From the IMG/VR virus record IMGVR_UViG_3300027793_000052, positions 1 to 64,000 of that record: a stretch of 64,000 nt of DNA; one strand, written 5' to 3'. Shown piece after piece: positions 3,170 through 12,524 of this stretch. The position numbers were made by a program, and so were the translations under genes. The stretch's first letter is position 1, and the number at the start of each line of letters is the position of its first letter. A model generated the notes under the pieces. That model was not told the DNA's origin. It did no database searches and worked only from the letters and a program-made list of their open reading frames with translations.

Positions 3170-4780
3170 ATGACAAAGTTCAAATCAAAAGCAGTGGAAA
3201 ATTTTGACGGTGGTATTTCTTATACCTTAAACCCATTGGATACATTACGTATCGTGGCAGCATCATCTATCTTTGGTGAACCATCTTATTACAGAGGTTC
3301 TCACGACAAACCATCTAACTTATCTACGTTAAAGACGTATGACGTGTTAGGTTTGTACAAAGACCCAAGTGATACAACTACTGATGTTTTCACTAAGGCT
3401 ATCGACGAGGCTTTAGACTATGACTTCAAGGCAACCCTTGAGTTAGCTAAGACTCTTCGTCACGAACACTTCATGAGGTTAAACCCAGCGGTTATCTTCA
3501 TTAGAGCGTCTCAACACCCAAAGAGGGTTGAATTTAACGAAGCAAACCCAGGTTTGATGAAACAATACGGTTTGGACATTGTTGGTCGTCCTGATGACAT
3601 CACCAACCAATTTGATTACTACATGTTCTTAAACGGTTCTAAGAATGGTTTACCATCTATCGTTAAGAGGACATGGGCTGAGAAGTTGGCGTCTTTCACC
3701 AAGTACCAAATCAAGAAATATAAGTCAAAGTCATTAATTGACTTGGTTCGTATTTCTCACGCACACTCTGAAGTTATCGATGAGTTAATGAAGACTGGTG
3801 ACGTGGCTGTTTCTGAAACTGAAACAACTTGGGAATCACTTAGGTCTCAAGGTAAGACTTGGAAGGAAATTCTTAACACAATTAAGGTTTCACACATGGC
3901 TTTACTTAGGAACTTAAGGGGTATTTTCACTGAGGTGAATGATACTGAAGTGGCTAAGAAGGTTTTAACTGACCTTAAGGCAGGTGTTAAGTTTGGTAAG
4001 CAATTCCCATTCCGTTACTACACAGCTTACAAGGAAATCGATAAGGTTTCTATAAACCACAAGGGTATGATACTTGACGCTTTACAAGAGTGTCTTGACA
4101 TCTCTATCGAAAACTTCCCTAAGTTAAAGGGTAAGGTGGCTTGTTTATCAGATAACTCTGGTTCAGCTTGGGGTACAATGACCTCTGAGTATGGTACAAC
4201 CCATATTGCTGAAATTGCTAACTTATCATCTATCATCACAGCTTTATGTTCTGATGAAGGATATGTCGGTGTCTTTGGTGAAAGATTGAGTTTAAAACCT
4301 GTTTCTAAAAGAGACGGTATTATTACTCAGTTGGAAGAAACTTGTAAGAGAGGTAAGTCTCAAGGACAATCTTGTGAACACGGTATTTGGTTATTCTTAC
4401 GTGAAGCAATCGACACTAAAACTCACTATGATACTATCTTTATTTATAGTGACATGCAGGCAGGACACGGTGGTCTTTACGGTACAAGTGTAAGCCGTGG
4501 TGACGTTCACTCTAGAGGTGGAAGTTATGTAGACGTACTTAAAATGGTACAAGAATACCGTAAGAAGGTTAACCCAAAGGTTAACGTATTCACAGTCCAA
4601 GTGGCTGGATACAACAACTCTGTTGTACCTGAAAACCTTTACAGGGGTTCAGTACTTGGGGGTTGGACTGGTAAGGAAGCCTTATACGCTAGTGAGGTAA
4701 TCAAGACTTGGGATGAAATTGAGTCTAACGACAAGGTTACATCTGAGGTTGAAGTTACTGAACAAGTAGTACAATCTTAA
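3170..4780 (+). CDS. Ro60/TROVE-domain RNA-binding protein (Rsr-like) with vWA domain
   Basis: MALLRNLR, KQFPFRYYTAY, vWA DNSGS and YSDMQ motifs; 536 aa; codon usage (AAC, TTC, CGT) suggests high expression. Confidence 0.9.
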   Translation: MTKFKSKAVENFDGGISYTLNPLDTLRIVAASSIFGEPSYYRGSHDKPSNLSTLKTYDVLGLYKDPSDTTTDVFTKAIDEALDYDFKATLELAKTLRHEHFMRLNPAVIFIRASQHPKRVEFNEANPGLMKQYGLDIVGRPDDITNQFDYYMFLNGSKNGLPSIVKRTWAEKLASFTKYQIKKYKSKSLIDLVRISHAHSEVIDELMKTGDVAVSETETTWESLRSQGKTWKEILNTIKVSHMALLRNLRGIFTEVNDTEVAKKVLTDLKAGVKFGKQFPFRYYTAYKEIDKVSINHKGMILDALQECLDISIENFPKLKGKVACLSDNSGSAWGTMTSEYGTTHIAEIANLSSIITALCSDEGYVGVFGERLSLKPVSKRDGIITQLEETCKRGKSQGQSCEHGIWLFLREAIDTKTHYDTIFIYSDMQAGHGGLYGTSVSRGDVHSRGGSYVDVLKMVQEYRKKVNPKVNVFTVQVAGYNNSVVPENLYRGSVLGGWTGKEALYASEVIKTWDEIESNDKVTSEVEVTEQVVQS

Positions 4781-5309: not shown

Positions 5310-5993
5310 ATGGAAAAAGTAACATTAGAAATTCGAGCCGCTGAGGGTGGTGAAGATTCGAAACTCCTTGTGGAGGACATGGCTGCAGTCTATCTGAAAG
5401 CAGCCAAGAATAAAGGTTTTACCGTAGAGTCCGAACATTGAAGAGACGGACTTGTTAGTATTTAGCTGACAGGTAAAGGGGTTAAGAAATACTTCCAAAA
5501 CGAAGTTGGTTGTCATAGATGGCAAAGAATTCCACCCACTGAAAAACGTGGTAGAGTACATACAAGTACAATTACAGTAGCTTTATTAGATTCCCAAAAT
5601 TATCAGGAGATAGACATCAATATGGATGAATTACGTATTGAAACAACTCGTGGTACAGGTAATGGTGGTCAACATAAGAACACAACAGATTCTTGTGTGG
5701 TTATAACCCATATACCAACAGGGATAAAAGTGGTTAGAGATGGTAGAAGTCAACATAAGAATAAGGACGAGGCTTTAAACGAAATAAAACAACGTCTAAA
5801 TGATTTATACCAACAAAACCATATGGATAAAGTTTCTAAAGAAAGAAAGGGTCAAATCGGTAGTGGTAATAGGGGTTCTGAAAAGAAACGTACCTACAAC
5901 CAAAAAATGGATTTGGTTATCGATCATGAAAGTGATAAGTCTACAAGTCTTAAACAATTCATGAAAGGTAAATTAGAACTATTAATGTGTTAA
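5310..5993 (+). CDS. Class I peptide release factor homolog (RF1/PrfH-like, no N-terminal domain) with in-frame UGA and UAG
   Basis: EIRAAEGGED, HRWQRIPPTEKRGRVHTS (PxT) and GGQ all in one frame; stops at 5439 (TGA) and 5463 (TAG). Confidence 0.8.
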
Positions 5994-6263: not shown

Positions 6264-8063
6264 ATGAGACATTTAATCAAGAAAATATTAAAAGAAGACA
6301 TCTTTCAAATGGATAGATTAAGGCAATTGGAAGAAGGTGACTTGTTCATCATCACAAAAGTTAATCAAAATCTAGAAGATTGTGATCCAGATGCTCTTAG
6401 TGTTCTAAACCCACTTATCGGTAAAGTTTGTAAAGTTATAACCACAGATTGGGATGTTAATTTATATGACGGTATGTGTGAAGAACATTATGGTTGGGGT
6501 GCTTATATAATGTCAGAAGATATGGTTGGTGGCCACGATTTATACGAAAAGAATGGTGAATGTAAAAAGGATAAATGTTATTGGGTTAATGACTACTATA
6601 TAGATTATGATATAATAGATGATGTAAATACTGATGAATTTTTTACACAACTAGACGAACAAGAAGAAGATTTTGGATGGATGGATGATATTATAGATAT
6701 ATCTATAAAAATAGGTGATGTTTTTTATATAGTAGATTATAATTACGGTTATGACATGCAACCTATAAATTATAGACCAAATGTAGTAAGATATATTTTT
6801 TATGTTACAGATATTTTTGAAGAAGGCGGTAAACTTCATTTAAATTACAAATATTGTGAACCTGTAAATGTCACATATAACCCAAAAGACTATATTAAAT
6901 CCAAATGTCGTTCCACGCAAGATGAGGTTATTGAATATGAAAGAGCTTTAGAGTTGGTAGATAAACAATATTGGCGATTTATGGGTAATAACAATATGAG
7001 TAATAATATAAACGAACAAGAAGAAGATTTTGGTTGGGCTGAAGAATCCATCTCAGGTGATTTAAATTTGGGTAAATATTTTGAAAATTCTGATATTTGT
7101 TTTGATGATGAAGTTAATGTTGATAACAACTGTAAAATTACCGTAACAAAAGATAGTTTTGTTTTTAAACTAAATTATAGTTGGTGGTTGAATAAATTTG
7201 GTGAAGACAATTGGATGTTGGATAGACTTATCAGATATGGAAGTATGGGATATGACAGTTATTATGTTGATTATGAGTTGGATGATGAGGAGTTTAATTA
7301 TATTTATTATATGATTAATGAAGAAAATAGATATAAACTAGCTGATTGTTTAAGTGTATTAAATGAAGATGTAAGTGAAAATGATTTAAAAAATAATCTA
7401 TATGATGTTTTTGAAAATTTTAATGGTATCTTACCGGTAGAAGGAATGGCCTCAGATGTTGTTTATGAACTATCAAGAGCTTTAGAAAAAAATCGAAATC
7501 AACAAATAAATTTGGAGTTTGAAGATTTAATGTCAAAGACTGTCGCTAAATTTGAACATGTTGGAGGTTGGAAAGAAGACTACATTTTAATAAAAATACC
7601 AAAAGAATTGGTTTTAGAAGCTTTAGAGCAAAATAAGGATGAAAATTTAACTGATATTGTGAAAAAATACAGTTACGTTTTTGATATAAATTGGGATGAT
7701 TTTTATTATGGTACTTTTGATTTAAGTGGTTCTGAGGATCAAATTAACGATATTATGGCCGATTATTTGGATAAATTAATTGATATATTAAATAATGATG
7801 ATACGATACAGACATTAAATAATTTTACATCTTCATTAAAAAAATTAGGTTTTAAAAAAGAAAATAATAAATGGTATAAAACAATTAAAAAAGATAATTT
7901 AGATTATGTTTTTATTGTTAGTGATATAAATGGTGAAGACATGAATTTAATTCTAACTATAACCGTTTTTTATGATACACAAACCAAATATAAAAATTAT
8001 AAATATAAAATAAGTTTTGACGAGTTGGGTTATTACATTAATAATTATATTTTAGACATATAA
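6264..8063 (+). CDS. Modular protein with MRHLIKKILKE leader and two EQEEDFGW junctions
   Basis: Leader plus repeated junction motif. Confidence 0.7.
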   Translation: MRHLIKKILKEDIFQMDRLRQLEEGDLFIITKVNQNLEDCDPDALSVLNPLIGKVCKVITTDWDVNLYDGMCEEHYGWGAYIMSEDMVGGHDLYEKNGECKKDKCYWVNDYYIDYDIIDDVNTDEFFTQLDEQEEDFGWMDDIIDISIKIGDVFYIVDYNYGYDMQPINYRPNVVRYIFYVTDIFEEGGKLHLNYKYCEPVNVTYNPKDYIKSKCRSTQDEVIEYERALELVDKQYWRFMGNNNMSNNINEQEEDFGWAEESISGDLNLGKYFENSDICFDDEVNVDNNCKITVTKDSFVFKLNYSWWLNKFGEDNWMLDRLIRYGSMGYDSYYVDYELDDEEFNYIYYMINEENRYKLADCLSVLNEDVSENDLKNNLYDVFENFNGILPVEGMASDVVYELSRALEKNRNQQINLEFEDLMSKTVAKFEHVGGWKEDYILIKIPKELVLEALEQNKDENLTDIVKKYSYVFDINWDDFYYGTFDLSGSEDQINDIMADYLDKLIDILNNDDTIQTLNNFTSSLKKLGFKKENNKWYKTIKKDNLDYVFIVSDINGEDMNLILTITVFYDTQTKYKNYKYKISFDELGYYINNYILDI

Positions 8064-8614: not shown

Positions 8615-10249
8615 GTGAAAATAAAATTATCCATATTATTTTTTTTATTCAGTTTAATCAATTCGGTTAAGTCACAAGTATCTACATGGTATACATTTTC
8701 TGAAACGGTTGGTACTTATACGGCCATAACAGGTGGTACTCAATTAGTTACCACAACTGCCGGTGCTATAACATATGATACTGACGGTAATAATATCGTT
8801 CTTCCTACCACATCAAGATTTGTCGTAAATGGTATTATCATTACAAATGTAAATATGACTGCGGATGGTTCACTATGGTGTAATCCAGTTACACCGACAT
8901 CTGGTTTTGGTACTACGGGTCCATTACAATCAGGTCAAGATGCGGCTGGTATAATATCAGTTATGGGAATGGATTTACGTAGTACTGCATTAGCTACACA
9001 AGTTTATGAAAGAAGATGGCAAGATGTGGGGACTGAAGTTGTATTTCAATGGCAGAATTGTGCGAGATATCTACAAAGTGGTACGGAAAGATTTTCATTT
9101 CAAATTAGAATAAACAAAACAAATAATCAGATTAGAATGGTATATGGTAATATGACAACCATAGCCAACAGTACCACTTATCAACCACAAGTTGGAATAC
9201 GAGGTCTTACCAATGCTGATTACATAGCCAGACGATTAACTAATTCAGTACCCGATGCATCTCCTAATTGGGGCGCACCTAATGGGACGACTAACGCCAC
9301 TACAAACGCACATACAGTTAGGTTTACATCTAATGGTTCTTGTTTTCCTGTTTCAGGATTAACATTTATATGGTCATATAGCGGTCCTTTATTCAATAAC
9401 GATTTGTGTGAGAATGCAACTCTTGTTACATTACCATATAATAGTGGAGTTGTAACAACGATAGGTTCAAGTACAGATGTTCCGAATGTCGCATCACCCT
9501 GTGACGATTATATTACTCAATCAAATAACTTATGGTATAGAGTAGTTGGTACGGGTAATGATATGACTTTTAATACATGTAACGCCTCTACTAATTTTGA
9601 TTCTGAAATAAGAGTTTATACAGGTGATTGTTCTTCATTAAATAGTATGGTTGAAGTTGTATGTAGTGATGATGATCCAAATTGTACTTCAGGTGGTGTG
9701 TTAGATCCTTCCGTTACGTGGTGTTCATCATTAGGTGTTAATTATTTTATATCTGTCGGATATTACACAGTTACAAGTACATTAAGTACTGGTAATTACG
9801 TATTAAGTGGTGTAGAAGGAGGTTCTTGTTCATCACTACCAGTAGAACTAATTCATTTTTCCGGTAAAGGATTTGAACATTATAATTTATTAAGGTGGAA
9901 AACCGCCACAGAAATAAATAATGACCATTTCACACTTGAAAGAAGTTTAGATGGAATTAGATTTCAAGAAATACAACAAATTGATGGTATGGGTAATTCT
10001 AATGTAATTCAAGAATACTCGACACGTGATTTTGAACTAAATACAGGGTTAATATATTACAGACTTATACAAACAGATTATGATGGTACACGTACCTATT
10101 CAGATATAATTGTAATTAATAGAGACCCTTACAAATCACTTAAGGTTGTTAGAATTACAAATGTATTAGGTCAAGACATAAATGAATGGAGTCCAGGTAT
10201 TAAACTCTATCATTATAGTGATGGTAGTATTGAAAAGAGAATAGAATAA
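8615..10249 (+). CDS. Secreted beta-rich protein with T9SS-type C-terminal region
   Basis: GTG start, signal peptide, LPVELIHF...WKTATEINNDHFTLERS...YYRLIQTDYDG and terminal NVLGQ..G..YSDG..EK typical of Bacteroidota T9SS cargo. Confidence 0.7.
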   Translation: MKIKLSILFFLFSLINSVKSQVSTWYTFSETVGTYTAITGGTQLVTTTAGAITYDTDGNNIVLPTTSRFVVNGIIITNVNMTADGSLWCNPVTPTSGFGTTGPLQSGQDAAGIISVMGMDLRSTALATQVYERRWQDVGTEVVFQWQNCARYLQSGTERFSFQIRINKTNNQIRMVYGNMTTIANSTTYQPQVGIRGLTNADYIARRLTNSVPDASPNWGAPNGTTNATTNAHTVRFTSNGSCFPVSGLTFIWSYSGPLFNNDLCENATLVTLPYNSGVVTTIGSSTDVPNVASPCDDYITQSNNLWYRVVGTGNDMTFNTCNASTNFDSEIRVYTGDCSSLNSMVEVVCSDDDPNCTSGGVLDPSVTWCSSLGVNYFISVGYYTVTSTLSTGNYVLSGVEGGSCSSLPVELIHFSGKGFEHYNLLRWKTATEINNDHFTLERSLDGIRFQEIQQIDGMGNSNVIQEYSTRDFELNTGLIYYRLIQTDYDGTRTYSDIIVINRDPYKSLKVVRITNVLGQDINEWSPGIKLYHYSDGSIEKRIE

Positions 10250-10289: not shown

Positions 10290-11033
10290 ATGGAAAATAG
10301 TGAGGATATACGTAAGTTTATAAACAGAGAAATTAAGGCAAATTCAATTTTTATCATCAAACAAATAGATAAAAAAGTTGCTTATGAATTTGTTAGGGTT
10401 TACCATTATTTGGGTGATGCTAAGTTCTTTGCTAAGTTTTCCTTTGGTTTATACCATAAAGAAACCGATGAATTATTAGGGATTACCGCCTTCTCAAACC
10501 CACAAGGTAATGTGGCTTTAAAAGGTTGGTTCGGATTACCTAATACAGACCAAACAGTATTAGAACTTAGTAGACTATGTGTTAAACCATACTTAAACGG
10601 AACCAACGCAACATCTTATTTATTGGGTAACAGTATAAAACTTCTTAAGAAAGAAGGGGTTAGAGCTGTTATAACATTAGCAGATGACAGTAGACACAAT
10701 GGTAGTATATACCAAGTATGTAATTTCAAATACTACGGTCTAACAGATAAAAAATCAGACTTCTTTCATTTGAACGATAAAGGCGAATGGAAAGTCAATC
10801 CAAGAGGACCCACAAAAGATAAAAACGGTGTATGGATTAATAGAACACAAAAACACAGATATGCCTACATCATAGACGAAAACCTAAAATGTCTATACGA
10901 ACAACTTTCATATCCTAAAAAAGACGATACAAAACAATATGATTGTTGTGCTGGTACTAAAATTGTAAAAGATAAACGCTTCAATATTGACTATCCGTGC
11001 CCCAAATGTACACTTTCTGTATTGGTCGAGTGA
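10290..11033 (+). CDS. Mom-like (GNAT-fold) DNA-modification protein
   Basis: HYLG, ELSRLC, LGNSIKLL, AVITLADD, HNGSIYQVCNFKYYG pattern. Confidence 0.65.
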   Translation: MENSEDIRKFINREIKANSIFIIKQIDKKVAYEFVRVYHYLGDAKFFAKFSFGLYHKETDELLGITAFSNPQGNVALKGWFGLPNTDQTVLELSRLCVKPYLNGTNATSYLLGNSIKLLKKEGVRAVITLADDSRHNGSIYQVCNFKYYGLTDKKSDFFHLNDKGEWKVNPRGPTKDKNGVWINRTQKHRYAYIIDENLKCLYEQLSYPKKDDTKQYDCCAGTKIVKDKRFNIDYPCPKCTLSVLVE

Positions 11034-11046
11034 TATTTATTAATAT

Positions 11047-11262
11047 ATGAATATCCATAAATTTATAAGAAGACATGATTTCATAAGTGGTAAACCATTT
11101 TATTCATTGTCAATGATTGAGGTTGTACCGAGAATTATATTTGATTTTGTACCAAACCGAATACCAACAAGATATTCAACAACAATGATTGATAGTAGGT
11201 ATTATTCTACGATAACATATAATAACCCAATGCCAATGGTCAACGGTACGGTACTATTTTAA
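11047..11262 (+). CDS. Hypothetical protein
   Basis: ORF track; ATATTTAT upstream. Confidence 0.45.
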   Translation: MNIHKFIRRHDFISGKPFYSLSMIEVVPRIIFDFVPNRIPTRYSTTMIDSRYYSTITYNNPMPMVNGTVLF

Positions 11263-11816
11263 TGATAACCAAATCTTTACCAATATTTTCTTTTATCAAT
11301 CCATCATTTAAATGGAGTTGTGTTCAATCTCGTATTGTAGTTGGTGAAACTAGGGCTATAAGAGCTATATGGACACCAGAACTCGCTCAAGATTTACAGG
11401 CTTTCCACAATATAGATGCTGAAGCTGAATTAACAGCTTTATTGACGGAAAATCTTAGACAAGAAATTGATACACAAATATTAAACGATTTACGTGTACG
11501 TGGTTGGGATAATTTATTTGATGTTAACAGAGGTTTAATTAATAACAGACCTGTAAATGATTTTGATAATATACAGTTACCTTTAATTAGACAAGTATCT
11601 GCAAGAACATTAGGTATGGATTTAGTAGGGGTACAATCATTGGAACTACCTGATGGGTTAATGAATTACCTAGATTATAATTATAGAACTTTACCTAATG
11701 AGGAAGGTTGGTACACAAACGATACTTGGGAATCTATATTCATTAATATGTATTTAAAACCACATAAATTTTTACCACCGAAACGTAGAAGTAGAAGGGA
11801 TATAAGAAATTTTTAA
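11262..11816 (+). CDS. Short protein built from T4 gp23-like major capsid segments
   Basis: WTPELAQDLQAFHNIDAEAELTALL..EID and LPLIRQV..DLVGVQSLELPDGLMNYLDY. Confidence 0.7.
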   Translation: MITKSLPIFSFINPSFKWSCVQSRIVVGETRAIRAIWTPELAQDLQAFHNIDAEAELTALLTENLRQEIDTQILNDLRVRGWDNLFDVNRGLINNRPVNDFDNIQLPLIRQVSARTLGMDLVGVQSLELPDGLMNYLDYNYRTLPNEEGWYTNDTWESIFINMYLKPHKFLPPKRRSRRDIRNF

Positions 11817-11852: not shown

Positions 11853-12524
11853 ATGAGAAACTTAATTAAAAAAATCATAAAAGAAGAAATAATTAATGAA
11901 TTTAATTTAAAAGAAACATTTACAAGACCATTGAAAAATATTTCTAAATTAGATGATTTCACCTACATTGGTTATGAAGACAATGTTAAGGCCATATATA
12001 ATTTCAGATTAGAAACTGTGGATGATAATATACCGAAAAGGTATTTTGGGGATTTGATTGATTATTTTTATGAATTTTCATGGAAATTCGACATGGAAAT
12101 GGATGTAGAATTAAAAAACGATTGGTCTTGGGTTAAAGCCACAACAACATCTATAAAAATAATAGATGATTTTATTAGAACAATAAACCCAAAACTTATA
12201 AAATTTAGTGGTAGAAGTGAAGGTACCAAATCTATGTATAATAACGACATTTTTGTTGATAAATTAAGATCAATATTTGGTCAAACACATAATATTATAT
12301 TAGATGATGACGATCCTGAAAATAGAAAAATCTACATATCAAAAAGAGAATACAATATTTTAAGTGAAGATACCATCCGTAAAAACATGGATTGTATGAC
12401 TTATGAAGAGGCTTATAGAATTGTGAAATTCCCTAAAAAAAACCAATTTAAAGGTATAGTAAGGAATAAATTTAAAAAAGAACAAATACAAAGAATATTA
12501 AACAAAGAAAAATATTTATTTTAA
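11853..12524 (+). CDS. Hypothetical protein with MRNLIKKIIKE leader
   Basis: Leader motif; ATATTTAT at 11832. Confidence 0.65.
   Translation: MRNLIKKIIKEEIINEFNLKETFTRPLKNISKLDDFTYIGYEDNVKAIYNFRLETVDDNIPKRYFGDLIDYFYEFSWKFDMEMDVELKNDWSWVKATTTSIKIIDDFIRTINPKLIKFSGRSEGTKSMYNNDIFVDKLRSIFGQTHNIILDDDDPENRKIYISKREYNILSEDTIRKNMDCMTYEEAYRIVKFPKKNQFKGIVRNKFKKEQIQRILNKEKYLF

Follow-up and report, generated by a model that had tools for sequence, protein, structure and literature searches.

Conserved mini-proteins composed of reordered major capsid protein segments in an uncultured freshwater jumbo phage

The region analyzed here (the window) covers the first 64,000 nucleotides of the 317,983-bp IMG/VR virus record IMGVR_UViG_3300027793_000052 (G000 hereafter; 96% complete, 30% G+C), which represents an uncultured freshwater T4-type jumbo phage. 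An ORF on the + strand at positions 11262–11816, opening with ATG, encodes a protein of 184 aa (the mini-protein, P0001). It is preceded by a 71-aa ORF at 11047–11262 (+), the stop codon of which overlaps the start of the mini-protein gene (TAATG), the two genes being translationally coupled. Further upstream, at 10290–11033 (+), lies a gene for a 247-aa Mom-like GNAT-fold protein with a C-terminal Cys4 ribbon (Pfam Mom, E 1.9e-26; PHROG 1384), which is the conserved upstream neighbor of the cassette. The downstream 223-aa ORF at 11853–12524 (+), of unknown function, is not conserved as a neighbor in other loci. The window also includes, at 8615–10249, a 544-aa ORF with a signal-peptide-like start, the C-terminal end of which resembles by eye a type IX secretion sorting domain; this would hint at a Bacteroidota host, although Pfam gave no hit for this ORF, and a neighboring gene in locus L009 has a weak Por_Secre_tail hit.

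The mini-protein matched the Pfam family Gp23 (PF07068) with an E value of 9e-21 (75 bits against a cut-off of 24.4) and PHROG 138 “major head protein” with an E value of 1.2e-18, in two separate stretches. Residues 26–79 matched profile positions 143–196 whereas nt 11556–11696 matched positions 2–48 of the 376-position profile, so that the order of the two blocks is reversed and the fold is not covered collinearly. The major capsid protein (MCP) of the phage itself is a 589-aa protein encoded at G000:C1:142300–144069, and BLASTP aligned mini-protein residues 21–79 to MCP residues 351–409 (E 1e-22 over the extended HSP) and residues 101–137 to MCP residues 72–108 (E 7e-7). This was further confirmed by profile-profile comparison of 39 members of the mini-protein family with 22 MCPs, giving probabilities of 99.8% (E 2.8e-30) for the middle segment and 97% (E 1e-10) for the N segment, with no match found by hhalign for the axial (A) domain. 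Against T4 gp23 (PDB 6uzc numbering), residues 21–75 aligned to 254–308 and residues 106–135 to 96–125. The latter alignment is weak on its own but is supported through the profile and through the alignment of MCP residues 64–107 of the phage to chain positions 15–61 of mature T4 gp23 (gp23*). The initial annotation had described this ORF as two major-capsid segments in reversed order, one of them equivalent to the T4 Gol region, and this observation is confirmed. Equivalence to Gol, however, holds as positional homology and not as shown function, with 7 of 30 residues identical to T4 over a stretch for which 13 critical residues are reported (PMC3014915). The initial annotation had not included the third capsid piece in the adjacent ORF, the propeptide remnant retained in some relatives, or the membership of the gene in a large conserved family, all of which are described below.

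Within the mini-protein, the first 18 residues (11262–11315) form a family-specific N-terminal motif in which P7, F9, F11 and P14 are conserved and which has no MCP counterpart (hhalign probability of 0.3% for this slice against MCPs). The middle segment (aa 21–79; 11322–11498) corresponds in the capsid fold to the return strand of the E-loop-equivalent linker, the short acidic P-domain helix and the first part of the spine helix. It is followed by a variable linker (aa 80–95; 11499–11546) that is absent in the short subfamily and that in long-linker relatives holds a remnant of the MCP propeptide (family alignment positions 90–161 to MCP 24–116, hhalign probability 96%). The N segment (aa 96–140; 11547–11681) matches MCP residues 65–117 and T4 gp23 residues about 86–130, and is the Gol-equivalent region. 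The C-terminal block (aa 141–170; 11682–11771) is again family-specific, with W150 and I161 invariant. Its apparent homology to MCP residues 417–436 is only marginal, with a shuffle test giving p 0.0055 for the window protein but 0.13–0.16 for two relatives and hhalign finding nothing, and is not claimed here. A basic C-terminal tail (aa 171–184; 11772–11813) is present in the long subfamily and absent in the short one. In all, only about 100 of the 184 residues are MCP-derived.

A word-index search restricted to proteins of 101–322 aa returned 134 hits to the mini-protein, of which more than 60 were clusters covering over 90% of the query at 33–79% aa identity and with lengths of 134–237 aa. 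All came from metagenomes (freshwater, GOS, Tara) and were named “hypothetical” at best, and none of the cultured phages in INPHARED carried the gene. The middle segment is conserved in this family at almost the same residues as in MCPs, the residues invariant in 22 MCPs (W, P-E, D, D-A-E-A-E-L-T, E-I-D) also being the conserved ones in the mini-proteins. The dN/dS ratio was 0.15–0.30 for unsaturated pairs, in agreement with purifying selection. The initial annotation had named two findings that would count against it, a similarity that is not significant in profile searches and a decaying fragment, and neither applies. Compared with the MCP gene of the phage, the middle segment is 63% identical in protein but only 65% identical in DNA, with a third-position identity of 53% and a longest exact match of 23 nt, showing that the duplication is old and without recent gene conversion. 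The scrambled segment order and the propeptide remnant in long-linker members point to an origin by tandem duplication and deletion. The locus occurred at 100% identity in runs of many independent studies and was covered by contigs from four freshwater metatranscriptome runs, although DNA carry-over in RNA libraries cannot be excluded. Contig depth in the metatranscriptomes increased 10–40 fold at 11315–11495 only, but the loose ends read as capsid-gene sequence of related phages, so that this spike reflects cross-mapping of abundant capsid transcripts on the conserved block and not expression of the mini-protein.

The upstream 71-aa ORF is a third MCP piece. Its family matched the C-terminal segment of the MCP, about the last 65 residues (MCP of this phage about 517–582), with an hhalign probability of 99.0% (E 2e-18), and the window copy matched MCP residues 550–575 by BLASTP (E 1e-5). 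A profile search found 268 relatives of 49–134 aa, and the family aligned to T4 gp23 residues 432–478. Across the two ORFs the capsid pieces therefore run C segment, middle segment and N segment, the full reverse of their order in the MCP. Many members of the small family end in a short copy of the start of the N segment, while the window copy lacks the stretch that holds the P loop in relatives, and some lineages have the mini-protein without this ORF. A shared N-terminal motif between the mini-protein and the 71-aa family was not significant. A fourth stand-alone capsid piece lies outside the window at G000:C1:77634–77807 (L094:4635–4808), where a 57-aa ORF copies the N-terminal propeptide of the capsid protein (profile positions 9–62, E 4e-8). 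In one lineage (locus L135:6659–6997) a 112-aa mini-protein has a degenerate middle-segment helix while both ends stay conserved, suggesting that the family-specific ends may carry function of their own.

Published structures of the T4 head (PMC9546572) place the head-length mutations of gp23 in three clusters, all near the quasi-threefold axes: A268V, A275T, D285V and D287V/N beside the short acidic P-domain helix that contacts neighboring capsomers; T457A, R460C and G461S in the P loop; and A66D, A94V and G97S in the N-terminal region that faces the scaffold before expansion. Through the alignments described above, the positions of A268, A275, D285 and D287 correspond to A35, A42, D52 and E54 in the middle segment of the mini-protein, those of A94 and G97 fall in its N segment, and the P-loop cluster falls in the region covered by the 71-aa family. 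The cassette thus holds the sequence blocks that build the P-domain periphery around the quasi-threefold axes and nothing of the axial or insertion (I) domains. It is worth noting that these are also simply the most conserved parts of gp23, so that the overlap with the length-mutation clusters may reflect the same cause rather than a shared function.

The cassette lies 130 kb from the head module, in which a T4-type prohead protease at 138.2 kb is found 4 kb from the MCP gene, with a scaffold-like ORF next to the latter (141.7–144.1 kb for the scaffold-like ORF and the MCP). Instead it is part of a translation, RNA-repair and RNA-quality island that also holds DNA modification (window 1–22000) and that includes DnaJ (171–884), 22 tRNA genes, a TROVE (Ro60-like) protein (3170–4780), a 123-aa RF-1-domain protein (5622–5993), the Mom-like gene and HNH endonucleases. 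In every mini-protein locus with enough upstream sequence (10 of 10), a Mom-like gene lies upstream, within about 3 kb, while the other neighbors vary; the Mom orthologues share 69–90% aa identity across loci where the mini-proteins share 33–79%. The reverse association is weaker, since of 54 Mom loci with at least 3 kb of downstream sequence 29 carry the mini-protein and 25 do not have it within 5 kb on either side. Some phages have a second, divergent Mom paralogue (264 aa, Pfam Mom E 1.9e-54) directly after the first, between it and the mini-protein (loci L124:4197–4991, L125:2626–3420 and L146:637–1431). Eleven related jumbo-phage records, six of them at least 90% complete, have the capsid gene but neither small ORF, and also lack this stand-alone Mom orthologue, showing that the cassette is accessory. 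A large ORF with a Mom domain at its C-terminus lies immediately downstream of the real capsid gene (approximately G000:C1:144111–145820; L001:2361 onward), and similar Mom-domain ORFs flank the capsid gene in the related records G004, G006 and G011, so that Mom-type genes neighbor both the capsid gene and its fragments, which may bear on how the cassette arose. A search for Mom fusions with capsid pieces showed that the N-terminal extensions of two Mom orthologues are unrelated to MCP.

In addition to the cassette, other small proteins carry the same capsid middle segment joined to unrelated N-terminal domains. These include P0115 and P0104 (131 and 120 aa), P0070 and P0064 (166 aa) and P0101 and P0071 (226 and 211 aa), with loci L091, L092 and L093, while P0065 (278 aa) joins the middle segment to a long propeptide plus the N segment. 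The first two classes are found next to RNA-ligase and PARP genes without Mom, and middle-segment-only classes also sit beside GIY-YIG genes. The middle segment thus behaves as a portable module and is the common denominator of the capsid-derived small proteins found, which the Gol-equivalent is not. Fourteen otherwise unrelated ORFs of the genome start with nearly the same 11-residue leader, M-(K/R)-x-L-I-(K/R)-K-I-(L/I)-K-E, at window positions 6264, 8063, 11853 (the downstream neighbor of the mini-protein), 39472, 48217 (− strand) and 54302 and at G000:C1 positions 75850, 78712, 80025, 81175, 145827, 149811 (− strand), 235363 and 235808. The same leader heads the roughly 300-aa ORF just upstream of the mini-protein in other phages. 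It ends in I/L-K-E, which fits the L/I-x-E site of T4-type prohead proteases (PMC9026906) such as that encoded by this genome, and could be a head-targeting propeptide, as inferred from sequence alone. The N-terminus of the mini-protein differs from this leader, and a reading of its sequence identified a single L/I-x-E site, an L-T-E inside the spine-helix homologue. The mini-protein thus has neither the multiple L/I-x-E protease sites nor the N-terminal targeting leader that would mark a prohead core or internal head protein of the T4 gp67/gp68/IP type.

Structure prediction and further database searches were of limited help. AlphaFold2 models of the window protein and of a short-subfamily member gave pLDDT values of 54 and 55, respectively, with only the short helix and the spine helix modeled at modest confidence and no confident fold, and a complex prediction of the mini-protein with the 71-aa protein scored 0.00, which is not used here for or against binding. 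A structural search of the ESM Atlas returned only proteins of its own kind and a capsid-fragment cluster at TM 0.40. Neither small ORF matched a PADLOC defense-system model at E 0.1 or an NCBIfam model. The T4 late-promoter word TATAAATA was not enriched, with 22 matches against 20 expected. A scan of GTDB genomes returned only capsid genes on phage contigs binned into assorted MAGs, with no clue to the host, and hits in Stenotrophomonas phages were full capsid genes annotated as hypothetical.

Among characterized systems, the T4 gp23-type major capsid protein (HK97 fold) shares three conserved blocks with the cassette, including the same invariant residues, but here the order is permuted and split over two ORFs, the A and insertion domains are missing, and the genes lie outside the head module and are dispensable in relatives. 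The T4 vertex protein gp24 is likewise an MCP paralogue kept for a distinct function, but it is a complete, collinear HK97-fold protein that forms pentamers, whereas the mini-protein is a fragment mosaic that cannot form capsomers; no gp24-like second full copy was found in G000. The Gol peptide of gp23, which triggers the Lit protease through EF-Tu, is positionally homologous to the N segment, but sequence identity is low, the host would be of a different phylum in which no Lit is known, and EF-Tu binding by the mini-protein would be an inference from position alone. The T4 prohead core proteins gp67 and gp68 are also small phage proteins proposed to influence head geometry through contacts with the shell protein (PMC9026906); their genes lie in the head cluster and their products are built into the core and degraded by gp21, whereas the present gene lies elsewhere and its product has only one L/I-x-E site. 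Satellite capsid-size redirectors such as the PICI Ccm protein, an MCP homologue, also use a capsid-protein relative to interfere with or redirect capsid assembly, but Ccm is a full-length fold encoded by a satellite and acting against its helper, while the mini-protein is a fragment encoded by the phage itself.

The analysis establishes that the ORF is a real gene that descends from an old partial duplication of the gp23-type MCP of the phage, that it keeps the middle and N-terminal P-domain segments on either side of a variable linker, and that the upstream ORF adds the C-terminal segment, whereas everything concerning function, including docking on MCP, association with proheads or virions, binding to EF-Tu and activation of a Lit-type protease, is inferred at most. 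By inference, the family probably docks on the capsid protein or on something that recognizes it. The reading tentatively favored here is that of an interface mimic: the protein cannot form capsomers yet would still present the surfaces by which MCP subunits contact each other and the scaffold, and would fold on binding and dock by capsid-like contacts onto MCP subunits, capsomer edges or the procapsid. As the cassette is dispensable in relatives, the effect would be accessory, such as tuning head assembly or geometry or tethering itself and possibly other proteins to the head, and would not be an essential structural role. This reading is in line with the highly significant segment homologies, with the conservation of the MCP-invariant residues, so that the same contacts are probably kept, with the location of the head-length mutation clusters, with wide conservation under purifying selection, with the low-confidence structure models, which are compatible with folding on a partner, with the recurrence of the middle segment joined to unrelated domains, as expected of a portable docking module, and with the stand-alone copy of the propeptide; the prohead protease and scaffold next to the MCP further indicate that T4 assembly logic applies. 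However, it rests on no binding evidence, the gene lies far from the head module, the absence of the cassette from 11 related records shows that it is not needed for assembly, and the absence of the 71-aa partner in some lineages together with the missing P-loop stretch in the window copy indicates that a rebuilt P domain is not obligatory.

The initial annotation had proposed a decoy or sponge for capsid-sensing immunity or, alternatively, an assembly modulator, and this interpretation is only partly supported, the function being neither shown nor excluded, with the assembly-modulator alternative fitting the anatomy better, the retained pieces being exactly the T4 head-length-determining regions (PMC9546572). 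In the decoy reading, which is possible but less likely than the interface mimic, the mini-proteins would display the most conserved, and so most “sensable”, MCP epitopes and would occupy or neutralize a host immune sensor that recognizes the capsid protein. It is supported by the accessory and patchy distribution of the cassette, by its faster evolution compared with the neighboring Mom-like gene, by its position beside this Mom-like DNA-modification gene of anti-restriction type, in an island of tRNA, Ro60-like, RF-1-domain and HNH genes far from the head module, and that of the middle-segment-only classes beside RNA ligase, PARP and GIY-YIG genes, by the sharing of the same conserved epitope among several independent architectures, and by the positional match of the N segment to Gol, a known trigger (PMC3014915). 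On the other hand, known capsid sensors are switched on by binding their trigger, as for Lit with Gol and EF-Tu (PMC3014915), so that a faithful mimic should trigger rather than blunt them. In addition, no defense-system model was matched, no host or defense system is known, the Gol-equivalent is missing from the middle-segment-only proteins, and strict conservation of residues that are structural in MCP is not required of a decoy.

A partnership with the Mom-like enzyme is more doubtful. The capsid-derived proteins would in this view regulate the enzyme, for example by holding it inactive until free MCP titrates them away late in infection, or would tether it to the head for packaging, as phage P1 packages its Dar anti-restriction proteins. 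The upstream Mom-like gene in 10 of 10 loci, the tight or overlapping gene junctions, the joint absence of cassette and stand-alone Mom orthologue from the 11 relatives, and the Mom-domain genes next to the real MCP gene in G000, G004, G006 and G011 are in favor of such a link, but the association is one-directional, unrelated ORFs are inserted between Mom and the cassette in the short subfamily, no fusion proteins were seen and shared ancestry of the locus could explain the synteny. A translation-linked role, in which the mini-protein would bind EF-Tu through the Gol-equivalent segment, as T4 gp23 does, and modulate translation or capsid-protein folding, appears unlikely: Gol binds EF-Tu domains II-III, is the most conserved part of gp23 and was proposed to matter for translation and folding of gp23 (PMC3014915), and the gene lies in an island rich in tRNA and translation-related genes, but identity to T4 over the Gol stretch is low, the reading does not explain conservation of the middle segment, the 71-aa ORF or the middle-segment-only proteins, and there is no binding evidence. 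A functionless relic of a rearranged duplication or an assembly artifact, to which the scrambled segment order, the propeptide remnant and the degenerate L135 lineage might point, is essentially excluded by the intact ORF in more than 60 clusters, the dN/dS values, the conserved non-MCP ends, the age of the duplication and the recurrence of the locus at 100% identity in independent metagenomes and in four metatranscriptome runs.

The gp23 domain itself is known, but literature searches within the paper library found no description of capsid-fragment mini-proteins, and the permuted, truncated, two-ORF architecture is not known as a conserved family, with a sizeable chance that it represents a new functional class. 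A more speculative and on balance unlikely possibility is that jumbo phages carry a class of “self-mimic” proteins, portable copies of the interface elements of their own capsid protein used as bait, either to disarm host sensors that recognize the capsid protein or to load cargo into the very large head, for example the neighboring Mom-like enzyme or the ORFs with the recurrent leader; the middle segment joined to unrelated domains in other phages would then be the same device with different payloads. Capsid proteins are both the central building block of phages and a major trigger of bacterial immunity, and the family described here, widespread in freshwater and marine samples, consists of inter-capsomer and scaffold-facing pieces of the capsid protein that have been cut out, reordered and kept under selection. 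If these proteins dock on the shell, they give a natural handle on how very large heads are sized or loaded, and if they act as bait for host sensors, they would be a new counter-defense principle; either way they mark which capsid surfaces matter.
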